Counted from the stretch's first letter, positions 53,285 through 63,999 are shown. The stretch: DNA of 64,000 bases from Hyalangium minutum (GCF_000737315.1 NZ_JMCB01000018.1:62001-126000), one strand, 5' to 3'. Numbers and translations: made by a program. The notes: generated by a model from the sequence alone, not told the origin.

Positions 53285-53530
53285 GACGTTCTCCCTCCAG
53301 GGCCGAGGATGGTGCGGACCATCGTGCACCGTCCGGTATCCTGAGAGAATCGAGATCCGCGGGACCTGGAGTGTCCAAGATCTGTCCACACTGGACAGGG
53401 GCTTGCTTCCCTGGCTGCCCATCCCCCAGGGAGGAGACAGCCAGCCGCCACACTTGCATCACTGGCTTGTTTCCGTCCCCTCACACGGCAGGCGTAGGGC
53501 GGTCAGAGGGATCCGCTACATCTTGTGAGC

Positions 53531-55276
53531 ATGAGCCATTCCTCGATCAGTGGTGCCGCTGAGCCCCCTGCCTGGCTCTGGAATGGGGAGGAGCCTCGGA
53601 TCATCTCCGCCTTCCAGCCCATCGTGGACCTGATGACCGGGGAGCCGATTGGCTTCGAGGTGCTCTCCCGAGGCATGGACCCTGTGCAGGCCGCCCACAT
53701 GCTCTTCAGCAAGGCGCGGGTCGAGGGCGTCACCTTCGAGCTGGAGCGGGCGTGTTGGACAGCGGCCGTCCGCCAGATTGCCCTCCTTCCGCTGGAGGCC
53801 AAGCGCGTCCCCTTCTTCTTCAACGTGGGGCCCGAGGTGCTGAGCGATCCGCGCTTCCACGATGGCTCCGTGCTGGAGCTGCTCGCCCGGTACGGCGTGA
53901 GCCCCCGTCAAATCGTCCTGGAGATCACCGAGACAAGCACCTTCGCGGACTCGGAGCAGCTCAGGCAGATCACCCGCCAGTGCATCGGCCATGGGTTCGG
54001 CATCGCGCTGGATGACTTCGGGGCAGGACACTCGGGGCTGGTAACGCTGGTGCACAGCGCGCCGCAATTCATCAAGCTGGATCAGGCGTTGGTGCGGGAC
54101 ATCCACCGGCACGGCTACAAGCAGCACTTGGTGAAATCGCTGGTCGCCTTCGCCTCCAGCGTGGACAGCACCCTCATCGCCGAGGGCATCGAGACCTGGG
54201 ACGAGATGAACGTGCTGCTGCGGCTGGGCATCCGCCACGCGCAGGGCTTTCTGGTGGCACGGCCCGCGAGCCAGCCGCCCCGCCCCTCCGAGGAGTTCCA
54301 GCGCCACCGCCGCGAGGCCCTCCGCGCGCTCCACTACCAGAAGGACGAGGACGACGAGACGGTGGGCGGCATCGTCATCCGCCGCCTCTGCCTGGACGCG
54401 GGGACGAAGACCGAGGAGTTGGACCAGCTCTTCCGGCGGACTCCCGGCCTGGATCACGTGGTGCTCCTCGCGGGCGACCGGCCCCACGCCTTGGTGATGC
54501 GCCACCGCTCGGAGCTGACCGCGAACGAGCGGCCGCTCGTGGTGGAGGACACCTTGAAGATCCCCGCCCTCGCGAGGGCGGCATTGGGGCGCGCGCCCGA
54601 GTCGCTCTACGAACCGGTGGTGGTGACGAATGCACAGGGACGGTTCCTGGGCACGGTGACGATGAAGCAGCTCATCGCCCGGGCCACGGACCTGGAGGTG
54701 CACGCGACCACAGGCGCCCACCCGCTCACGCAGCTCCCGGGGAACCGGATGATCGAGCGATGGATCCGGCAAGCCCTGCGCGGCTCCTCTGGGTTCACCG
54801 TCATCTACGCCGATCTGGATCGGCTCAAGGAGTACAACGAACGCCACGGCTTCCCTCGGGGAGACCAGCTCCTTCGCCTCACGGCGCGAGTGCTCTCCGA
54901 GAGCCTGCACCTGCTGCCCTCGGGAAGCCATCTGGGCCATGTGGGCGGGGACGACTTCGTGCTCGTGTGCCCTGGCGAAGTGAACCCCGAGGCGCTGGAG
55001 GCCCTCTGCCAGCGCTTCGATGAGGAGAAGCGCGCACTGTTCGACCCGGGCGAGTTGGAGCGAGGGTTCTTCGAGGCCACGGATCGGAAGGGCAACCGCG
55101 TGCAGGTTCCCCTGGTGACGCTGAGCCTGGCGGTGCTCGACAGCCGGCGGATGGGCGGGACCGTGCACCCGGCCTCGCTCTCCGGCCTGGCGGCCTCGCT
55201 GAAGAAGAAGGTAAAGGAGCAGGCCGCCACCTCGCGCACCAGCGCGTTCATGTTCGAGCGCCGCGCACAGGTGTAA
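53531..55276 (+). CDS. EAL-CBS-GGDEF c-di-GMP metabolising protein
   Basis: FQPIV, EVLSR, EITE, DDFGAG, IKLD, AEGIET and QGFL (EAL); YEPVVVT...FLGTVT (CBS-like); DLD..K.YN..HG...GD and GGDDF. Confidence 0.9.
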   Translation: MSHSSISGAAEPPAWLWNGEEPRIISAFQPIVDLMTGEPIGFEVLSRGMDPVQAAHMLFSKARVEGVTFELERACWTAAVRQIALLPLEAKRVPFFFNVGPEVLSDPRFHDGSVLELLARYGVSPRQIVLEITETSTFADSEQLRQITRQCIGHGFGIALDDFGAGHSGLVTLVHSAPQFIKLDQALVRDIHRHGYKQHLVKSLVAFASSVDSTLIAEGIETWDEMNVLLRLGIRHAQGFLVARPASQPPRPSEEFQRHRREALRALHYQKDEDDETVGGIVIRRLCLDAGTKTEELDQLFRRTPGLDHVVLLAGDRPHALVMRHRSELTANERPLVVEDTLKIPALARAALGRAPESLYEPVVVTNAQGRFLGTVTMKQLIARATDLEVHATTGAHPLTQLPGNRMIERWIRQALRGSSGFTVIYADLDRLKEYNERHGFPRGDQLLRLTARVLSESLHLLPSGSHLGHVGGDDFVLVCPGEVNPEALEALCQRFDEEKRALFDPGELERGFFEATDRKGNRVQVPLVTLSLAVLDSRRMGGTVHPASLSGLAASLKKKVKEQAATSRTSAFMFERRAQV

Positions 55277-56288: not shown

Positions 56289-57770
56289 GTGCGGTTGCAA
56301 AGCTGGCACAAAGCCTTGGCTTGGAGCGTGGCGCTGGCGTTCGTCGGTATCACGCTGGCCCGGCTCTACCCGGACAGCTACCAGCAGGACGGGGGCGCGC
56401 ACTATGCGCTCACCCGCTGGGCCTTTGATCATCCGTGGTTCTTCGTGAAGGTATGGGCCCGTCCCCTCTTCGAGGCCGTCTACGCGGTGCCCGCGCAGTG
56501 GGGCCAGCCCGTGGCGAAGCTCGTCACCGTCGCCGTGTGCCTGGCCACCGGCTGGCACACCTTCCGGCTCGCCGAGCAGCTCGGGCTCGCCCGGCCCCAC
56601 CTGGCCATTCCGCTGGTGTGGTTCCAGCCCTCCTGGCTGCTGCTGTGCTCCGAGATGATGACCGAGCCCCTCTTCGCGCTCGTCTTCGTCCTCGCGTTGA
56701 GGCTCCACCTGGCGGGCCGCGTCGTGGCGGGCCTGTGGACCGCCTCGCTCCTGATCCTGGCCCGGCCCGAGGGCTTCTTCCTCGGCATCCTGTGGGGCCT
56801 GTGGATCCTCCTCGACCGGCGCGATCCCCAGCCCCTGTGGAAGCGGCTCCCCTCCACCCTGCGGCTTGCCGCAGGCTTCGGGCTGTGGTGGCTGGCCTCG
56901 GTCGCGATCACAGGCAACCCGCTGTTCATCCTCGATGACTGGCCCAGGGACTGGGACGCGACCAACGGCGCCTACGGCACCGAGCCGTTCTGGAGCTACG
57001 CCCTTCGCCTGCCCGAGATCGTGGGGCCCCTGTTCGCGATCCCGTTCCTCCTGGGGCTGGGCCTCCTGCTCTTCCGCCGCCAGCTCGGGACGCTCACCTC
57101 GTCGTTCCTCCTGTTCTTCCTGCTGCACTCCGTGTTCCGGACCCTGGGGGTGTTCGGCGAAGCGGGCTATCCGCGCTACTTCGTCAGCGTGGCACCCGCC
57201 ATGGCCCTCATCACCCTGATCGGATGGAACACGATCACCGGGAAGCTCTCTCTCCCCCTCTTCACGGGGACGCTGGGAGCGCTCGGGCTGGGCGCCTCGG
57301 CCGCGGCGGCGTTCATCTACGTGGATGCCGCCGAGTCGTCTCGCGACGCATGGGCCATCGACGCCACCCTGGCCCGCTTCCGCGAGTCGCCGCGCGAGGT
57401 GCTCCGGATCCATGCCAGCCATCGCTACATGTACGCCGTGCTCGACTACGACCCCAAGCTGGCACCGGCATTCACAGCGGATCGGGAGCACAACCAGAAG
57501 GTCCTCCGAGAAGCTCCCGCGGGCACGCTCGTTGTCTGGGAAGACCACATTGGCCCCTCCTGGTACCACCTGGAGGAGAAGGACATCGAGGCGCTGGGCT
57601 ACACGCTGCTGCGCTCCGATACCTCCGTGCTCACGGGCAAGTGGCTGAAGGACTCACCGGGTCTCTTCTTTGACTACGGTAGCGGCGTCTTGACGCGGGA
57701 GCGCTCGAGTTGGCCCGGCTTCGGCGGGCCTCGCACCGTGAGGGTGTCGCTCCTCTATAAGGAGCACTGA
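56289..57770 (+). CDS. Polytopic membrane protein, GT-C (ArnT/PMT-like) glycosyltransferase-like
   Basis: More than 10 TM segments; first loop QQDGGAHY...W.RPLF; MTEPLFA, ARPEG and GYPRYF; soluble C-terminal domain. Confidence 0.65.
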   Translation: MRLQSWHKALAWSVALAFVGITLARLYPDSYQQDGGAHYALTRWAFDHPWFFVKVWARPLFEAVYAVPAQWGQPVAKLVTVAVCLATGWHTFRLAEQLGLARPHLAIPLVWFQPSWLLLCSEMMTEPLFALVFVLALRLHLAGRVVAGLWTASLLILARPEGFFLGILWGLWILLDRRDPQPLWKRLPSTLRLAAGFGLWWLASVAITGNPLFILDDWPRDWDATNGAYGTEPFWSYALRLPEIVGPLFAIPFLLGLGLLLFRRQLGTLTSSFLLFFLLHSVFRTLGVFGEAGYPRYFVSVAPAMALITLIGWNTITGKLSLPLFTGTLGALGLGASAAAAFIYVDAAESSRDAWAIDATLARFRESPREVLRIHASHRYMYAVLDYDPKLAPAFTADREHNQKVLREAPAGTLVVWEDHIGPSWYHLEEKDIEALGYTLLRSDTSVLTGKWLKDSPGLFFDYGSGVLTRERSSWPGFGGPRTVRVSLLYKEH

Positions 57771-57971
57771 GCCGCCTCCACCGTGACACCGCAACGTGAC
57801 CGCCTGGTTGCTCCTTCGCCAGACGTTCGCGACACGCTGCGGCACGAGTTGATCGCACGAGAAGGCTGGGTGAAATCTGCCCCCATCCGCGAGGCATGTG
57901 GCGGGATGCGGACAGTCACCCTCCCCGGATAACCTCCCGCCCCTCTCCAATCCGGAAGAGGAACGCACGAC

Positions 57972-59966
57972 ATGATGAAGATTCGAACGGGTCGCACGCT
58001 GCAAGCGGCACTTCTCGCGGGCTCACTGTCCCTGGCGGCGTGTACCGGCGATCAAGGTCCTCAAGGGGCACAGGGTCCCGTGGGAGACGTAGGAACCCCC
58101 GGCCCCGTAGGCCCCGTAGGCCCTCCGGGCGATCCGGGCCCCGCGGGCACCATGAAATGGCTCTCTTTCGCGGACGTGGGCTTCCCCCGCACCAATGCGG
58201 AGAAGCATCAGGTCCGCGCGTCGTCGCGGGTCAACGTCAACGGCACCGAGCACCCCATCAGCTTCACGACGATTCTGCGCGGCGGCCAGGACCCGGCGCG
58301 GCCCGAGCGCCAGTGCGATCTCGTCAACAGCCCCAACACCTGCCTGAACGTCCTGCTGTCGCGCACGGGCCAGCCGCTGCGCGATGACGCGGGCCAGGTC
58401 ATCATCACCAACGCCCACGACAACACCTCGTTCATCCAGGTGGGCGGCAAGACGTTCATGTACAGCTCCACCGAGTCGTACCCAGCGAACATGTTCGTGA
58501 CGTCCATCAACCAGGACGCCAACGGCAACCTCTCGGCGACCGCGACGAAGGCCCTCGACACCTCGCCCATCGACGGCTTCTGGTACTCGTGCGCGGGCTC
58601 GAAGTCGCCGTGGAACACGCACATGGCCTCCGAGGAGTTCCCGCCGGACGCCCGCTTCGTGCAGGAGCGCACCAGCTGGAGCGACCTGAAGGCGAGGGCC
58701 ACCTCGCCCACGTTCGCCGAGTTCAAGCTCATGGCGCAGTACTTCGGCGTGAACCTGACCGACGCGGACATGGACGGCGTGCCGGATGGCGACTACCGCA
58801 CCACCTTCCTGTCGACGTTCTCGCCCTACTTCGCCGGCTTCCCGGTGGAGATCACCCTGGACGAGAACGGCAACGGCTCGCTCAAGAAGCACTACGCGAT
58901 GGGGCGCGGCTCGGTCGAGGTGCCGTACGTGATGCCGGACAACAAGACGGTCCTGCTCACGGATGACGGCGCGAACGTGGGCCTCTACATGTTCGTGGCG
59001 GACACGGAAAAGGACCTGAGCGCGGGCACGCTGTACGCGATGCGCGCCTACCAGACGAGCCCTCGCGGCGGGGCGATCTTCACCGCCGACATCGAGTGGA
59101 TCAACCTGGGCCACGCGACGAACGACCAGATTCGCGCCTTCATCCACCCGTCGAGCGGCGCGCGCATCACCTTCGCGGACATCTTCGAGGCGGAGACGCC
59201 GAACGGGGATGGCACCTGCCCGACGGCGGGCTTCAAGGCGGTGCGCGGCGCGAACTCGGAGAACCTGGAGTGCCTCAAGCTGAAGGCGGGCATGGAGCTG
59301 CCGGCCTCGCGCTTCGAGACGCGGCGCTACGCGGCCCTGCTCGGCGCCACCACCGAGCTGAACAAGGAGGAGGGCCTCACCTACGATCCGGACTCGCACA
59401 CGGTCTACATCGCGCTGACGGAGATCGCCAAGGGCATGATCACGCAGCCGGGCGGAGATGATCACATCAGCGTGGCGGCCAACGCGTGCGGCGGCGTGTT
59501 CGGGCTGAACGTGGGCTCGTACACCAACGCGGACGGAGCGGTGGTGACGAAGTACGCGCCCCTCAACTGGTACCCCATCATCATGGGCGTGCCCGTCAGC
59601 TACCCGGCGGGCAGCGAGTACACGGGCAACTCGTGCAGCGTCAACGGGCTGGCCAGCCCGGACAACGTGACGTACCTGCCCGGGTACAACACGCTGATCA
59701 TCGGTGAGGACACCAGCGGCCATCAGAACGACGCCATCTGGTCGTTCAACACGGTGACGAAGAAGCTCGAGCGCATCATGACGACGCCTTACGGCTCGGA
59801 GACGACCTCGCCGTACTGGTACCCGGACCTGAATGGCCACGGCTACCTCATTGGCGTGGTGCAGCACCCGTACGGTGAGACGGACGCGGTGCGTATCTCG
59901 GATCCCGAGGCGACGGGCCGCGCCAGCTACGTCGGCGTCTTCGGTCCGTTCCCGCCGCTGAAGTAG
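57972..59966 (+). CDS. phoX: PhoX-family (DUF839) alkaline phosphatase lipoprotein with a collagen-like stalk
   Basis: Lipobox LAAC, then (Gly-X-Y)~11 GDQGPQGAQGPVG... PhoX-like motifs CAGSKSPWNTHMASEE, MGR.SVE, TDDG, SPDN, GED and VVQHP. Confidence 0.8.
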   Translation: MMKIRTGRTLQAALLAGSLSLAACTGDQGPQGAQGPVGDVGTPGPVGPVGPPGDPGPAGTMKWLSFADVGFPRTNAEKHQVRASSRVNVNGTEHPISFTTILRGGQDPARPERQCDLVNSPNTCLNVLLSRTGQPLRDDAGQVIITNAHDNTSFIQVGGKTFMYSSTESYPANMFVTSINQDANGNLSATATKALDTSPIDGFWYSCAGSKSPWNTHMASEEFPPDARFVQERTSWSDLKARATSPTFAEFKLMAQYFGVNLTDADMDGVPDGDYRTTFLSTFSPYFAGFPVEITLDENGNGSLKKHYAMGRGSVEVPYVMPDNKTVLLTDDGANVGLYMFVADTEKDLSAGTLYAMRAYQTSPRGGAIFTADIEWINLGHATNDQIRAFIHPSSGARITFADIFEAETPNGDGTCPTAGFKAVRGANSENLECLKLKAGMELPASRFETRRYAALLGATTELNKEEGLTYDPDSHTVYIALTEIAKGMITQPGGDDHISVAANACGGVFGLNVGSYTNADGAVVTKYAPLNWYPIIMGVPVSYPAGSEYTGNSCSVNGLASPDNVTYLPGYNTLIIGEDTSGHQNDAIWSFNTVTKKLERIMTTPYGSETTSPYWYPDLNGHGYLIGVVQHPYGETDAVRISDPEATGRASYVGVFGPFPPLK

Positions 59967-59972
59967 CTTCCG

Positions 59973-60003
59973 GGTCCGGGCCGTCCTCGTGACGGCCCGG
60001 GCC
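59973..60003 (+). terminator. Hairpin between phoX and the CxxCH lipoprotein gene
   Basis: ccgggccgtc (59976-59985) / gacggcccgg (59991-60000), 5-nt loop, extendable by 3 bp; no U-tract. Confidence 0.55.
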
Positions 60004-60041
60004 TTGGAGTGGTCCCCCCTCTCACAGGAGCTCGTTGAAGG

Positions 60042-61847
60042 ATGTGGATGCCGCCGCGTGACTTGCTGTTGCCGCTCTCGCTGCTCCTCGCGGTCTGTGC
60101 CTGCCGTGGCACGGAGTCCAAGACCCCGGATGCGGGGACCCCAGGCGCTCCCAGTGCCGATGCGGGGCTGGCCCGGGTGGCATCACCGGATGATGTGCTC
60201 ACGCACGTCACGCCTTACATCCCACCGCAGTGCTACACGAAGACCCAGGGCGAGAAGGGGCGCACGCACAACCCCTGCTTCGTGTGCCACCAGGGCTCTC
60301 GCCCTCCCAACTACATCGATGACGCCGCGGTGCAGCTCGACTTCGCCTTCCCCCGAGCGGCGAAGCGCAACCCCTGGACGAACCTCTTCGTGGATCGGCG
60401 CCAAGCGGTCGCGGCCATGCCGGACGAGGAGATCCTCGCGTACGTCCGCCAGAGCAACTACCTCGATCCCGACAGCTCGCCGATCCTCGCGCGCACGCTC
60501 CAGCAAGTCCCCAAGGAGTGGGACGCGGATCACAATGGCCGCTGGGACGGGTGGGTGCCGGACCTCGCGTTCTCCTTCGACGCTCGCGGTTTCGATCGCC
60601 GGCCGGATGGGAGCCTGACGGGCTGGCGCGCGTTCGCGTACTACCCCTTCCCTGGCACCTTCTGGCCCACCAATGGCTCGTTCGGGGACGTGATGATCCG
60701 CCTCCCCGAGTCCTTCCGTCAGGACGAGAGCGGCCAGCCGGACACCGAGGTGTATGGGCTCAACCTCGCCATTCTCGAGTCGCTGGTGGCCCGCCGGGAT
60801 GTCCCCATCGCTCCGGTCCAGGAGACCAGGCTCGGCGTCGATCTCGATGGCGATGGCAAGCTCGGGACGGCCAAGCAGGTGAAGTTCACGTGGGCACCAC
60901 CTCAGCGCACCATGAGCTGGGTGGGCCGTGCGCGCACGCTGCAACAGAAGGACGAGCTCCACCTCGCGGCGGGCCTCTTCCCGGAGGGGACGGAGTTCGC
61001 GCATACCGTGCGCTACCTCGACGTGGTGGACGGAAAGCCCCGGATGGCGGCGCGGCTGAAGGAGCTGCGCTACATGGTCAAGAAGGGCTGGCTCCGGTAC
61101 GGAGAGCTCATGCAGGCCTCCGGGCGCGAGGCGCTCGAGGCGGTGCAGAGCCCCGACAAGACGCGCAGCATCGGCGGCAGCACCGAGCAGGGGATCGGCA
61201 ACGGCTCGGGCTGGCGTCTTCAGGGCTTCATCGAGGACGCCAGCGGCCAGCTGCGCCCCCAGACGCGCGAGGAGCACGCGTTCTGCATCGGCTGCCACTC
61301 GGGCATTGGCGCGACGGATGACAGCGTCTTCTCGTTTGGCCGCAAGCTGCCCGCTTCGGAGTTCCAGGCGGGGTGGTTCCACTGGTCCCAGCGCGGACTG
61401 GAGGGTGTGCGCGAGCCGGTGCGAGCGGACGGCCAAGGTGAGTACACGTACTATCTGGAGCACAACGGCGCGGGCGACGAGCTGCGCGCGAACACGGAGG
61501 TGCTGGAGCGCTTCTTCACCCCCGAGGGCGCGCTCCGGCCGGAAGCCACCCAGGCCCTCCGCGCCAACATCTCCCCTCTGCTCCTGCCGAGCCCCGCTCG
61601 GGCCCTGCAGTTGGACAAGGCGTACAGGCTGATCGTCCGCGAGCAGAGCTTCACACGCGGGCGGGATGCCACCGTGGAGCCCGCCAGCAACGTCCACCGG
61701 GAGCTCCCGGCCGAAGACAAGGCGCTCGAGACGGGCGTGGAGGATCCGCTGCCCGGGCCTCACGAGGGCAAAGTCGCCCGGTATCCAGGACTCCCGGGGG
61801 CGGCGCGGCCCGCTCCGAAGCCCGTGAGCGCCAAGTCCTCGCCCTGA
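60042..61847 (+). CDS. Uncharacterised lipoprotein with two CxxCH haem c-binding motifs
   Basis: Lipobox AVCAC; CFVCH at 60276-60290; CIGCH at 61284-61298. Confidence 0.8.
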   Translation: MWMPPRDLLLPLSLLLAVCACRGTESKTPDAGTPGAPSADAGLARVASPDDVLTHVTPYIPPQCYTKTQGEKGRTHNPCFVCHQGSRPPNYIDDAAVQLDFAFPRAAKRNPWTNLFVDRRQAVAAMPDEEILAYVRQSNYLDPDSSPILARTLQQVPKEWDADHNGRWDGWVPDLAFSFDARGFDRRPDGSLTGWRAFAYYPFPGTFWPTNGSFGDVMIRLPESFRQDESGQPDTEVYGLNLAILESLVARRDVPIAPVQETRLGVDLDGDGKLGTAKQVKFTWAPPQRTMSWVGRARTLQQKDELHLAAGLFPEGTEFAHTVRYLDVVDGKPRMAARLKELRYMVKKGWLRYGELMQASGREALEAVQSPDKTRSIGGSTEQGIGNGSGWRLQGFIEDASGQLRPQTREEHAFCIGCHSGIGATDDSVFSFGRKLPASEFQAGWFHWSQRGLEGVREPVRADGQGEYTYYLEHNGAGDELRANTEVLERFFTPEGALRPEATQALRANISPLLLPSPARALQLDKAYRLIVREQSFTRGRDATVEPASNVHRELPAEDKALETGVEDPLPGPHEGKVARYPGLPGAARPAPKPVSAKSSP

Positions 61848-61848
61848 C

Positions 61849-62393
61849 TCAGGGGACGATCTGGATCTGGGCGATGCCCTCGAACTCGACGGCGCTGCCC
61901 TTCGTCACGCCCACCGACTGGCTCCAGCCAGCGGGGACCTCGAGCACGTACTGGCTGGGGGCACCCACCGAGCGCGCCGTGAGCGTGCGCGGCTGGGCCC
62001 GCTCGACAATGCCTGCCACCTTCATCTGCGAGTTGATGAAGATCATGTCCAGCGAGATGAGCGTGTTGCGCATCCAGAAGCTCTGCACCTCTTCGTCCGG
62101 GAAGAGGAAGAGCATGCCCTTGCCAGCCGCCATCTCCGTGCGCCACATCAGCCCGCGGGTGCGCGCATCCGGAGTCGCAGCCACCTCCACCTCCACCCGG
62201 TGCACTCCTCCGAAGGCGTCGTGCAGGCGCACGAACGCTCGCGGCAGCGTCGGCATCACATAGTCCTTCGCGGTCACGTCCGTTGGGGGAGGAGTCGGGG
62301 CCGGCGGCGGCTTGCCCTGGGCCTCGGGCGCCTGGCAGGCCAGCACCAACAGCAGCGCGGCGCCCACCGCATGCACGGAAGCGCGGCGCAGGC

Positions 62394-62397
<4 letters not shown>
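61849..62397 (-). CDS. DUF192 family lipoprotein
   Basis: VEVAATPDARTRGLMWR, GMLFLF, FWMRNTLISLDMIF and YVLEVPAG. Confidence 0.92.
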
Positions 62398-62786
<389 letters not shown>

Positions 62787-62811
62787 GCTGGCGCGGAGTA
62801 TAGGGGAGCCT

Positions 62812-63999
62812 ATGCAGCAAGTCCTGTGGTCCCGCGCTTCTGCCCTATTGCGTCGCCCCGCCGTTCTCATTGTGGCGGGTGTGATGGCCCTGGGGGGCTC
62901 TTGCCTTGTCTTCCTGCCGCTCTTCGGGCTGCCGGGCTTCGAGCTGGGACTGGCCCTCTCGATCGCCGTGGGCCTGCTGGGCGGTGGGGTGGGCATCGCC
63001 GCCGCGGCCCAGGAGCGCCGCGTCATCCGGGGCGAAGAGCCCCGCCTCCAGACGCTCCCCCGCCCCGAGCACCGGGGACAGGCGGTGGCCCTGGCCCTTG
63101 GCACCGCGCTGCTGGTGAACGGGGCCGTCCTCGTGCCCCCCTTCCTCAGTTCCACCCTCTTCGCGCTCTTTTCAACCCAGTGCGATCCGTTCGAGCTGGT
63201 GGGCTTCTACCCGCTGCTCACCGTGCCCTCTGCGGTGCTCTCCGCCGCCGCGGGCGTCCTCTGCGGCTTCTGGATCCGGCGGCCCGGCCGGGCCGTGCTC
63301 GCCTACATCGGGCTGGTGCTCCTGTCCGGGGTCCACACCGCGTGGCCCATCATCGCCGGGCCCCAGGTGTACGCCTTCAACCACTTTCTCGGACATCTCC
63401 CCGGCCCCCTCTATGACGAGGCGCTGGCGGTGACACCGAAGCTGCTCTGGTTCCGGCTGGAGACGGTGCTGCTGGCCGGGCTGCTCGCGCTGCTCACCGC
63501 CGTGAGCCTGGACGTGAAGGAAGGACGCCTCACCCGGCCGCGCCCCTCACTCGGAGGCTGGGTGCTGCTGGCGCTGCTGGTGGGGGCTTTGGCCCTCCTG
63601 GAGGGGAACGGGCCGGCGCTCGGGCTGCGGATGACGCACGAGTACCTGGCCGAGCAGCTCGGCGGGGTGCGCGACACGGAGCACTTCCGGCTGCACTACC
63701 CGCGGGGCATGAATCGCGAGGCGGTGGAGCGGATGGCGAGGGACCTCGAGTTCCGCCACCACCAGCTCTCCCAGTTCCTCGGCGGTGGACCTGCGGAGCG
63801 GATCCGCGTCTACCTCTATAAGACGGAGGAGGAGAAGCAGGCACTGGTGGGTGCGGGCCGGACGCAGTTCGCCAAGCCGTGGCTCGCCGAGCTGCACATC
63901 AACGACAAGCCCTTCCCCCACACCAGCCTGCACCACGAGCTGGCGCACGTGATGGCGGGCCCGGCGGGGAGCGGCCCATTCCAGGTCACCACGCGCCTG
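62812..63999 (+). CDS. Membrane protein with an extracytoplasmic HExxH zinc-peptidase (MA clan-like) domain, 3' end beyond the window; absent from the ORF track
   Basis: Manual translation from ATG 62812: MQQVLWSR..., about 7 TM segments, then EHFRLHY...RIRVYLY...QFAKPW.AELHI...LHHELAHV; frame open to the window edge. Confidence 0.8.
   Translation, partial: MQQVLWSRASALLRRPAVLIVAGVMALGGSCLVFLPLFGLPGFELGLALSIAVGLLGGGVGIAAAAQERRVIRGEEPRLQTLPRPEHRGQAVALALGTALLVNGAVLVPPFLSSTLFALFSTQCDPFELVGFYPLLTVPSAVLSAAAGVLCGFWIRRPGRAVLAYIGLVLLSGVHTAWPIIAGPQVYAFNHFLGHLPGPLYDEALAVTPKLLWFRLETVLLAGLLALLTAVSLDVKEGRLTRPRPSLGGWVLLALLVGALALLEGNGPALGLRMTHEYLAEQLGGVRDTEHFRLHYPRGMNREAVERMARDLEFRHHQLSQFLGGGPAERIRVYLYKTEEEKQALVGAGRTQFAKPWLAELHINDKPFPHTSLHHELAHVMAGPAGSGPFQVTTRL

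Follow-up and report, generated by a model that had tools for sequence, protein, structure and literature searches.

Why a gene for a large lipoprotein with two haem-binding motifs should stand immediately behind a gene for a PhoX-like phosphatase is the question raised by a locus of Hyalangium minutum (GCF_000737315.1, NZ_JMCB01000018.1:62001-126000), hereafter referred to as the window, i.e., the whole stretch of 64,000 nucleotides (nt) that was analysed and whose G+C content amounts to ~68%. PhoX is a major bacterial enzyme that frees phosphate from organic matter; it makes use of an Fe3+2/Ca2+3-oxo cluster as a cofactor, and its iron requirement has been used as an argument that iron limits the acquisition of phosphorus in the oceans. 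On the + strand of the window, an open reading frame (ORF) of 664 amino acids (aa), encoding the PhoX-like protein, is followed after a gap of 75 nt by an ORF of 601 aa encoding the predicted cytochrome, and the closest homologues of both proteins occur in Hyalangium and related Myxococcaceae. A first-pass annotation of the sequence had described this layout and gap together with the motifs CFVCH, CIGCH and PPQCYTKT, all of which were recovered, except that the second gene probably starts at the ATG located at 60048 and encodes a product of 599 rather than 601 aa. This start is favoured because the Shine-Dalgarno-like sequence GAAGGA (60037-60042) abuts the ATG at 60042 and is better spaced, 5 nt ahead, with respect to the ATG at 60048, and because several of the cytochromes most closely related to it, the best match included, are likewise 599 aa long.

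The two genes form, with near certainty, a functional unit, and the cytochrome very probably serves the PhoX-like phosphatase as its dedicated partner. Relatives of the cytochrome, which belongs to the uncharacterised Pfam family PF27085 (termed "Aq_1262" after an uncharacterised ORF of Aquifex), occur in at least 442 of the ~185,000 species genomes scanned, and the gene neighbourhoods were taken from the best 80 loci. These 80 loci cover the Myxococcota, the Alpha-, Beta- and Gammaproteobacteria, the Campylobacterota, the Desulfobacterota and Holophaga (Acidobacteriota), and the hosts of the module include marine hydrocarbon degraders, sulfur oxidisers, purple bacteria, methanotrophs and myxobacteria. 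A PhoX-like gene occurs immediately upstream and on the same strand in 74 of the 80 loci; among the six others, three are cut at contig ends, one (L062, organized as PhoD - ORF - Aq_1262 - PhoX) has its PhoX gene immediately downstream, and two are devoid of PhoX. The linkage of the two genes that had been supposed in the first-pass annotation, together with a proposal to count neighbours across phyla, is borne out by this census, with an adjacent PhoX-like gene in 75/77 informative loci and with invariant CxxCH motifs and cysteine in the cytochrome, which strongly favours a functional unit over a chance neighbourhood. When read in the reverse direction, the PhoX-like genes of Alcanivorax, Microbulbifer and Thalassolituus (3/3) are each followed by a PF27085 gene.

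Most often 130-350 nt separate the stop codon of the PhoX gene from the PYIPPQCY motif of its neighbour and, because most of this distance corresponds to the coding sequence of the signal peptide, little room is left between the genes, which in Alcanivorax even overlap. Moreover, the two proteins co-evolve, their pairwise sequence identities being correlated (r = 0.77 over 69 pairs, as compared to a maximum of 0.15 in 500 permutations of the labels). Two Thiomicrorhabdus loci (L050 and L063) display two tandem PhoX-like copies ahead of a single Aq_1262 gene. All-against-all clustering of the ORFs around the 80 loci revealed no third conserved gene, if shadow ORFs and genus-level synteny are set aside, and it was ruled out on this basis that the pair belongs to a longer operon or comes with a transporter of its own. 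A fusion protein of PhoX with Aq_1262 was also looked for and none was found, the candidates P0147 and P0178 being tandem duplications of PhoX. The two-gene PhoX-Aq_1262 module appears to be undescribed, its haem family is uncharacterised, and a search of the literature yielded no description of the pair, its sole precedent being a PhoX/MauG-like pair of Flavobacterium. The earlier statement that no such system had been described holds for the PhoX-Aq_1262 pair and has to be amended with respect to the Flavobacterium operon, which was already known and contains another haem family.

The upstream protein looks like a genuine but atypical PhoX-type catalyst, as judged from its predicted fold and from the conservation of its motifs. 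It matches the Pfam family PhoX/DUF839 (PF05787) over aa 197-621 with 57.9 bits (gathering cut-off 24; E 1.4e-15), a profile made from 25 sequences of its clade (alignment A2) matches the PDB structures 3ZWU/4AMF of the Pseudomonas fluorescens PhoX with an E-value of 1.8e-15, and hhalign pairs it with the full-length Pseudomonas PhoX at a probability of 98.4%. The AlphaFold2 (AF2) model, with a predicted local distance difference test score (pLDDT) of 87.8, has 3ZWU_A, the P. fluorescens PhoX, as its best Foldseek match (E 3.9e-20, prob 1.00, template modelling (TM) score 0.52-0.58), followed by generic propellers at ~1e-6. According to the HMMER and hhalign alignments, the PhoX motif sites listed in Table 1 are invariant throughout the 25 sequences of A2, the Arg385 of P. 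fluorescens PhoX being replaced by an equally invariant Lys465 in the clade of the window. That the protein might be no more than an ordinary propeller whose active site has been lost was ruled out by these alignments, in which the motif residues are retained. Cys179 is presumably the thiolate ligand of iron, and Glu273, Asp292, Arg385 and others are taken here as residues of the metal/phosphate site; these roles reportedly go back to the PhoX structure solved by Yong et al. in 2014. The list of metal ligands is drawn in part from the invariance observed across the family, the conservation itself having been computed.

Between its lipobox and its propeller, the PhoX-like protein possesses a collagen-like linker, which is also matched by collagen chains of the PDB over aa 24-61 and which, with pLDDT values below 50 for aa 1-59 of the model, has the appearance of a disordered tether. 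The length of this linker differs among the Myxococcota homologues. Tethers with G-X-Y (or GTDGxxG) repeats, of very variable length, similarly occur between the lipobox and the propeller in the loci L003-L010, L024, L042, L067 and L070, which belong to the Myxococcota and to some Gammaproteobacteria and Campylobacterota. Such a repetitive sequence suggests a flexible stalk that would keep the enzyme off the membrane.

As inspection of the signal peptides indicates, the export route is the feature that discriminates the paired clade from the canonical PhoX enzymes. The signal region of the PhoX-like protein of the window lacks a twin-arginine motif, in agreement with the Sec export already supposed for it in the first-pass annotation. 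More generally, the partner PhoX proteins, 70+ in number, all exhibit signals of the Sec type I or lipoprotein kind, and none of them shows a credible twin-arginine translocation (Tat) motif. A Pseudomonas PhoX that shares ~90% identity with the crystallised enzyme served as a control; it displays the Tat motif SRRGFI, and no gene for a haem protein occurs as a neighbour of this Tat-dependent PhoX. The lipoprotein or soluble status of one partner matches that of the other in ~54/60 loci that could be classified by eye. Export through the Tat pathway is held to let PhoX bind its metals before it leaves the cytoplasm, and at least one survey deliberately restricted its PhoX model to sequences with a Tat signal, all other PF05787 proteins being treated as paralogues (PMC12594817).

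The second protein is a cytochrome of novel fold, predicted to be a di-haem c-type protein from its two motifs and its Sec export. More than 3659 homologues were retrieved, and the PF27085 match is a precomputed one, carried by all 120 of the listed homologues, among them close ones with 88-91% identity at a coverage of 100%. An exhaustive profile search with the cytochrome gathered 711 clusters at 50% identity and revealed no remote superfamily. Both CxxCH motifs and Cys64, the sole free cysteine of the mature protein, are invariant in alignments of 15, 60 and 129 sequences, and it is because of this invariance that they do not represent chance matches; the other cysteines, C19 and C21, belong to the signal peptide, C21 being the last residue of the lipobox ...LLAVCAC21. 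His321 and His447 are also invariant. Cys64 may serve as a haem axial ligand or as a catalytic thiol, as far as can be read from its conservation, and the loop of the DxDxDG type is a possible Ca2+ site, a dependence on Ca2+ being common to the cytochrome c peroxidase (CCP)/MauG enzymes and to PhoX. Between phyla, the cytochromes share 50-60% identity, with ~80 invariant positions over 550 aa in the alignment of 60 sequences.

With respect to its architecture, the cytochrome had been claimed, from the sequence as read by eye, not to resemble MauG/CCP or small cytochromes, and this claim stands: neither Pfam CCP_MauG (PF03150) nor cytochrome-c matches it at E <= 0.01, and single-sequence as well as profile searches against the sequences of the PDB returned nothing meaningful. 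Nor was any similarity to class I cytochromes seen in sequence or fold. A Foldseek comparison of the predicted structure, also proposed at that stage and carried out here on an AF2 model with a pLDDT of 84 and a predicted TM score (pTM) of 0.85, disclosed no significant fold match in the PDB, and CCP/MauG structures are absent from the 50 best matches. The top matches concern a β-rich domain of ~140 of the 600 residues, ending in the second CxxCH, and consist of the cytochromes P460/c'-β 6HIU, 9HRK, 7EAD and 2JE2; with E-values of 0.05-1 and a TM (target) of ~0.43, they are not significant. These weak matches agree with the Pfam P460 (PF16694) match to aa 387-430, which, at 19.8 bits, is below its cut-off of 27. 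One of the predicted haems may be housed in a P460/c'-β-like pocket and perhaps bind a ligand, the other being perhaps ligated by His and Cys.

How such a cytochrome could serve a phosphatase is tentatively answered by considering it as a redox partner or activase, which would build or maintain the Fe3+/Ca2+ cofactor of the Sec-exported PhoX, a proposal that we hold to be the likeliest of those considered and quite possible, without going so far as to call it probable. The two genes would be co-transcribed as a self-contained periplasmic module. The PhoX-like enzyme, a predicted phosphomonoesterase, would cross the membrane via Sec, unfolded, as a lipoprotein and, because it would be exported in this unfolded state, its Fe3+/Ca2+ site would have to be assembled outside the cytoplasm. 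In the cytochrome, the P460/c'-β-like haem would have an open coordination and the second haem would be ligated by Cys64. The protein would then supply or remove two electrons, so that periplasmic Fe2+ could become the oxo-bridged di-ferric centre of the PhoX cofactor; alternatively, it would keep this cofactor oxidised in reducing habitats. Such a role would be analogous to that of MauG on methylamine dehydrogenase and to that of the MauG-like partner of the Flavobacterium PhoX, and the whole module would serve the scavenging of phosphate. Among possible functions, the first-pass annotation had put forward an oxidation or delivery of iron for the assembly of the cofactor, or an action on reduced or organic phosphorus substrates. 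The action on the metal site of PhoX, the direction of the electron flow, the ligation of the haems and the regulation by phosphate (Pho regulation) are points that we infer.

The genomic context is suggestive of phosphate scavenging, as far as neighbouring genes and Pho-box-like sites can be relied on. In Microbulbifer the pair is followed by genes for PhoA, a CHAD protein and a TonB-dependent receptor, and PhoD precedes the pair in L062. A scan for the Pho box (CTGTCAT-N4-CTGTCAT, 11/14 matches, shuffle p <= 0.05) detected Pho-box-like sites upstream of the PhoX-like gene in ~14 independent loci where ~4 were expected (binomial 1.6e-5), an enrichment that concerns the proteobacterial loci and says nothing on the myxobacterial promoter. 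In the window itself, a scan for sigma-70 promoters gave no match. The region 57850-57960 of the window, compared to the loci L001-L003, contains conserved blocks upstream of the PhoX-like gene, e.g., GGCTGGGTGAAATCTGCCCCC and CCGGATAACCTCCC, which are possible promoter or regulator sites.

This context bears directly on another explanation, according to which the pair would be a two-subunit periplasmic oxidoreductase: the Fe-Ca site of the PhoX-like protein would carry out redox chemistry on reduced or unusual phosphorus compounds (e.g., phosphite, hypophosphite) and the haems would pass the electrons to the cytochrome pool, the cytochrome being the electron-transfer subunit. The near-obligate pairing, the tight spacing or overlap of the genes and the high conservation of the cytochrome are all compatible with such an enzyme, two haems would suit a two-electron oxidation, and the fusions of Aq_1262 with propellers, including those of the cd1 type, mimic redox enzymes that combine a cytochrome and a propeller. 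In addition, many of the hosts are lithotrophs or phototrophs living on inorganic electron donors, and the PhoX of P. fluorescens has a measurable, although very low, phosphite-oxidising activity (PMC12704751). However, all of the phosphoryl-transfer residues of the PhoX motifs are kept and nothing indicates that the active site has been remodelled, the neighbours and the upstream motifs indicate phosphate scavenging rather than energy metabolism, and no reduced-phosphorus transporter or ptx/htx genes were seen around the 80 loci. Many other hosts, moreover, are ordinary aerobic heterotrophs (Hyalangium, Archangium, Alcanivorax, Microbulbifer), and the algal members of the clade have no obvious use for such a partner. 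An oxidoreductase of this kind appears unlikely, and it is somewhat more doubtful still that the pair corresponds to a new Fe/Ca-cluster plus two-haem oxidoreductase of phosphite/hypophosphite which would feed electrons to the respiratory or photosynthetic chain and be distinct from PtxD, alkaline phosphatase and C-P lyase.

Returning to the cytochrome as a redox partner or activase of PhoX, the occasional departures from the two-gene arrangement have to be weighed. A C-terminal fusion joins Aq_1262 to a cd1-type propeller, Cytochrom_D1 (PF02239), with E-values of ~1e-71 to 1e-75, in P0365 and P0405, and to a propeller of the PD40/Tricorn type in P0092; P0367 is likewise a fusion with a propeller of the latter type. 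In the two fusions with readable flanks, P0365 (L088) and P0092 (L089), a neighbouring PhoX gene is retained, and the pairing thus persists in the presence of additional domains. Another fusion, P0376, encoded by a single short metagenomic contig, associates a PF04185 phosphoesterase (PLC/AcpA family) with a complete Aq_1262 protein in which both CxxCH motifs and the conserved cysteine are retained. The contig of the locus L018, which encodes a paralogous Aq_1262 protein (P0095), also bears a normal PhoX-Aq_1262 pair (L023); like P0095, the paralogue P0065 is extended at its N-terminus by a DUF7151 and lacks a PhoX gene next to it. Finally, P0178 from the green alga Parachlorella kessleri (1148 aa) consists of two tandem PhoX domains and matches the PhoX-like protein of the window with an E-value of 7.6e-182 and 33% identity, from which it follows that the PhoX clade of the window includes eukaryotic algal phosphatases.

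Several of these observations, together with a few others, speak against a role of the cytochrome in the assembly or upkeep of the PhoX cofactor. Two loci, L018 and L048, possess an Aq_1262 gene with no PhoX gene adjacent to it. The P0376 fusion connects the haem protein with the metabolism of phosphoesters at large and not specifically with an Fe-Ca cofactor, since PF04185 phosphoesterases are not known to use iron; an enzymatic role of its own would account for this fusion no less well than the assembly of an iron cofactor. The cytochrome is also slightly more conserved than PhoX (mean identity 54.8% vs 50.4%), and this conservation, with its ~80 invariant residues, looks more like that of an enzyme with its own substrate than like that of an assembly factor. 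Algal PHOX enzymes are secreted and active as phosphatases, and c-type cytochrome maturation is not known from the eukaryotic secretory pathway; if this holds, the algal member implies that the clade can work without a haem partner. The occurrence of the module in likely strict anaerobes (Trichlorobacter, Desulfobulbaceae) implies that an oxidation driven by O2 or H2O2 is not general.

These same facts lend themselves to a further explanation, in which Aq_1262 would be an independent haem enzyme of phosphate starvation, working beside phosphoesterases and not on them. As an oxidase or peroxidase, for example, it might unmask organic phosphorus; as a reductase, it might release the phosphate and iron bound in Fe(III) minerals. 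Besides the fusion to an unrelated PF04185 phosphoesterase and the two loci without adjacent PhoX, the enzyme-like conservation combined with a low haem density (2 haems in ~570 aa) suggests a substrate of its own, the P460/c'-β-like domain suggests a ligand-binding haem, and PhoA or PhoD co-occur in some of the loci. Co-regulation, however, rarely yields an immediate adjacency of ~97% across six or more phyla together with a correlation of r = 0.77, no substrate or transporter genes accompany the pair, and the Flavobacterium analogue is of the MauG/CCP type, a family known for protein maturation or peroxide reduction. An independent enzyme is, on balance, improbable.

The remaining features of the locus are collected in Table 1. 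The GC-rich hairpin located between the two genes, which had been thought able to tune their stoichiometry or to separate them, is real; its 14-bp stem comprises 13 Watson-Crick pairs and one G.U pair with a loop of 5 nt, and the 86-nt stretch that contains it folds at -41.6 kcal/mol (z = -2.4). A canonical intrinsic terminator was not found at this hairpin, which is devoid of a T tract. It is kept at its position in L001-L003, although both of its arms have changed; L006 has a different hairpin at that place and the Archangium loci have none, so that it is confined to the closest Hyalangium-like relatives and cannot be considered as a general feature of the module. It is read here, from its sequence and distribution, as a lineage-specific stem-loop, putatively a stabiliser of the messenger RNA or a partial terminator, standing outside the core module. 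Convergent with the cytochrome gene and separated from it by 1 nt, a DUF192 (PF02643) gene is kept at that position only in L001 and L003, and is left outside the module because of this restricted conservation. Directly upstream of the PhoX-like gene, an ORF of 493 aa with the appearance of a multi-pass membrane protein has no Pfam or NCBIfam match; it occurs at the same position in L001 with 74% identity and is absent from the other loci. Genes of cyclic di-GMP (c-di-GMP) signalling flank the region and are unconnected to the PhoX/cytochrome finding.

Table 1. Coordinates of the features of the window and of the homologous loci referred to in the text.
Feature	Position	Strand	Remarks
EAL + degenerate-looking GGDEF protein gene	53525-55276	+	c-di-GMP signalling
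Multi-pass membrane-like ORF	56289-57770	+	493 aa
PhoX-like gene	57972..59966	+	664 aa; lipoprotein signal, collagen-like linker, PhoX-type β-propeller
Sec/lipoprotein signal peptide	57972..58043	+	lipobox Cys24 (LSLAAC)
Collagen-like G-X-Y linker	58044..58151	+	aa 25-60; Pfam Collagen 25 bits, below cut-off
Sites identical to P. fluorescens PhoX (part 1)	58590..59867	+	C207 (=Cys179), E221/E222, E293, K306, R312, E316 (=Glu273)
PhoX motif sites (part 2)	58590..59867	+	D331/D332 (=Asp291/292), K465 (=Arg385), E467, N504, D564, E610, T612, Q631-H632
Intercistronic GC-rich hairpin	59972..60004	+	stem 59972-59985 / 59991-60004
Aq_1262-family (PF27085) predicted di-haem c lipoprotein gene	60042..61847	+	601 aa; probable real start ATG 60048
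Cys64 (PPQCYTKT / QCYT)	60231..60233	+	100% conserved
Haem motif 1, C79-F-V-C82-H83	60276..60290	+	invariant
D267-L-D-G-D-G272 (DxDxDG-type loop, GVDLDGDG)	60840..60857	+	D267, D269, G272 invariant
β-rich domain with haem motif 2	60909..61331	+	weak cytochrome P460/c'-β resemblance
Haem motif 2, C415-I-G-C418-H419	61284..61298	+	invariant
DUF192 (PF02643) gene	61849-62397	-	convergent with the cytochrome gene
PilZ protein gene	62394-63155	-	c-di-GMP signalling
Aq_1262 paralogue P0095	L018 9269-11557		DUF7151 extension
Thiomicrorhabdus tandem PhoX-like copies	L050 6055-9827		
Thiomicrorhabdus tandem PhoX-like copies	L063 228-4022		
Fusion P0376	L087 827-3988		PF04185 phosphoesterase
Fusion P0365	L088 6001-8961		cd1-type; PhoX gene still adjacent, divergent
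Fusion P0092	L089 6001-9063		PD40/Tricorn-type; PhoX gene still adjacent, upstream
Fusion P0405	L090 3-2738		cd1-type; begins at contig end

Should the cytochrome prove to be a redox partner or activase of PhoX, a large clade of PhoX enzymes would solve its cofactor problem by means of a dedicated periplasmic haem protein, and a reason would be provided why such enzymes may be inactive when they are expressed alone. The Flavobacteria appear to have independently reached the same solution with an unrelated di-haem protein. The pair offers a first functional handle on PF27085, an uncharacterised and highly conserved haem family of novel fold, and makes testable the question of how an Fe3+/Ca2+-oxo cluster is put together, or protected from reduction, outside the cytoplasm. 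If the pair acted instead on reduced phosphorus, a new reaction would have to be added to the redox cycle of this element.

Compared to known systems, the PhoX-like protein of the window shares with the canonical PhoX of P. fluorescens (3ZWU/4A9V/4ALF/4AMF) the β-propeller fold and the motif residues, including Cys179, Glu273 and Asp291/292, but differs by its low identity (~17%), its Sec/lipoprotein signal in place of a Tat signal, the Lys that replaces Arg385, and an extra N-terminal region with a collagen-like linker; the canonical PhoX, in turn, has no adjacent haem gene. The cytochrome recalls the cytochromes P460/c'-β by a β-sheet domain ending in the second CxxCH, these non-significant matches being its only structural ones. 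With the cytochrome cd1 architectures, it has in common that a Cytochrom_D1 propeller forms part of certain Aq_1262 fusion proteins and that Aq_1262 generally travels with propellers; unlike cd1, the propeller of the window is of the PhoX type, belongs to a separate polypeptide, and comes without evidence for a d1 haem.

MauG is a di-haem c catalyst of oxidative maturation (cited in PMC8812569), encoded beside the β-propeller-containing methylamine dehydrogenase, whose tryptophans it oxidises to give the tryptophan tryptophylquinone (TTQ) cofactor. In the role proposed here, the cytochrome would resemble MauG in its periplasmic location, in its two c-type haems and in the proximity of its gene to that of a β-propeller enzyme, but Aq_1262 is not homologous to MauG and its proposed target would be a metal cluster.

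The closest parallel is found in Flavobacterium johnsoniae, in which Fjoh_2478, a lipoprotein PhoX-like enzyme, shares an operon with Fjoh_2477, a MauG-like di-haem protein (PF03150), both being strongly induced by the depletion of inorganic phosphate; Fjoh_2478 is separate from the PhoXI and PhoXII clades and conserves 9/10 of the active-site residues (PMC8115612). When produced alone in Pseudomonas putida, the Flavobacterium PhoX was inactive, and Lidbury et al. proposed that the MauG-like protein may be required (PMC8812569). The membership of the Flavobacterium partner in the di-haem cytochrome c peroxidase family (PF03150) might also suggest that the haem protein is a protective peroxidase or redox buffer, which would shield the Cys-ligated iron of an envelope-exposed PhoX from H2O2, sulfide or other redox-active compounds and be unneeded for its assembly, as would be consistent with the conservation of the Fe-ligand Cys and with the location of many hosts at oxic-sulfidic interfaces. 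A generic protectant, however, needs no adjacency to its client in nearly every genome, and Aq_1262 has no detectable similarity to peroxidases, which leaves a protective function very improbable. In favour of a partner that builds or maintains the PhoX cofactor, the pair of the window, like that of Flavobacterium, associates a Sec-exported lipoprotein PhoX, distant from the canonical enzymes, with a co-oriented gene for a di-haem c protein, but the partner belongs to PF27085 here and to PF03150 there, with no similarity in sequence or fold, and the hosts belong to other phyla. Two cases are accordingly at hand in which a Sec-exported PhoX has a di-haem c protein as its partner, the haem families involved being unrelated; among the indirect arguments, this one speaks most strongly for an action of the haem partner on PhoX itself.

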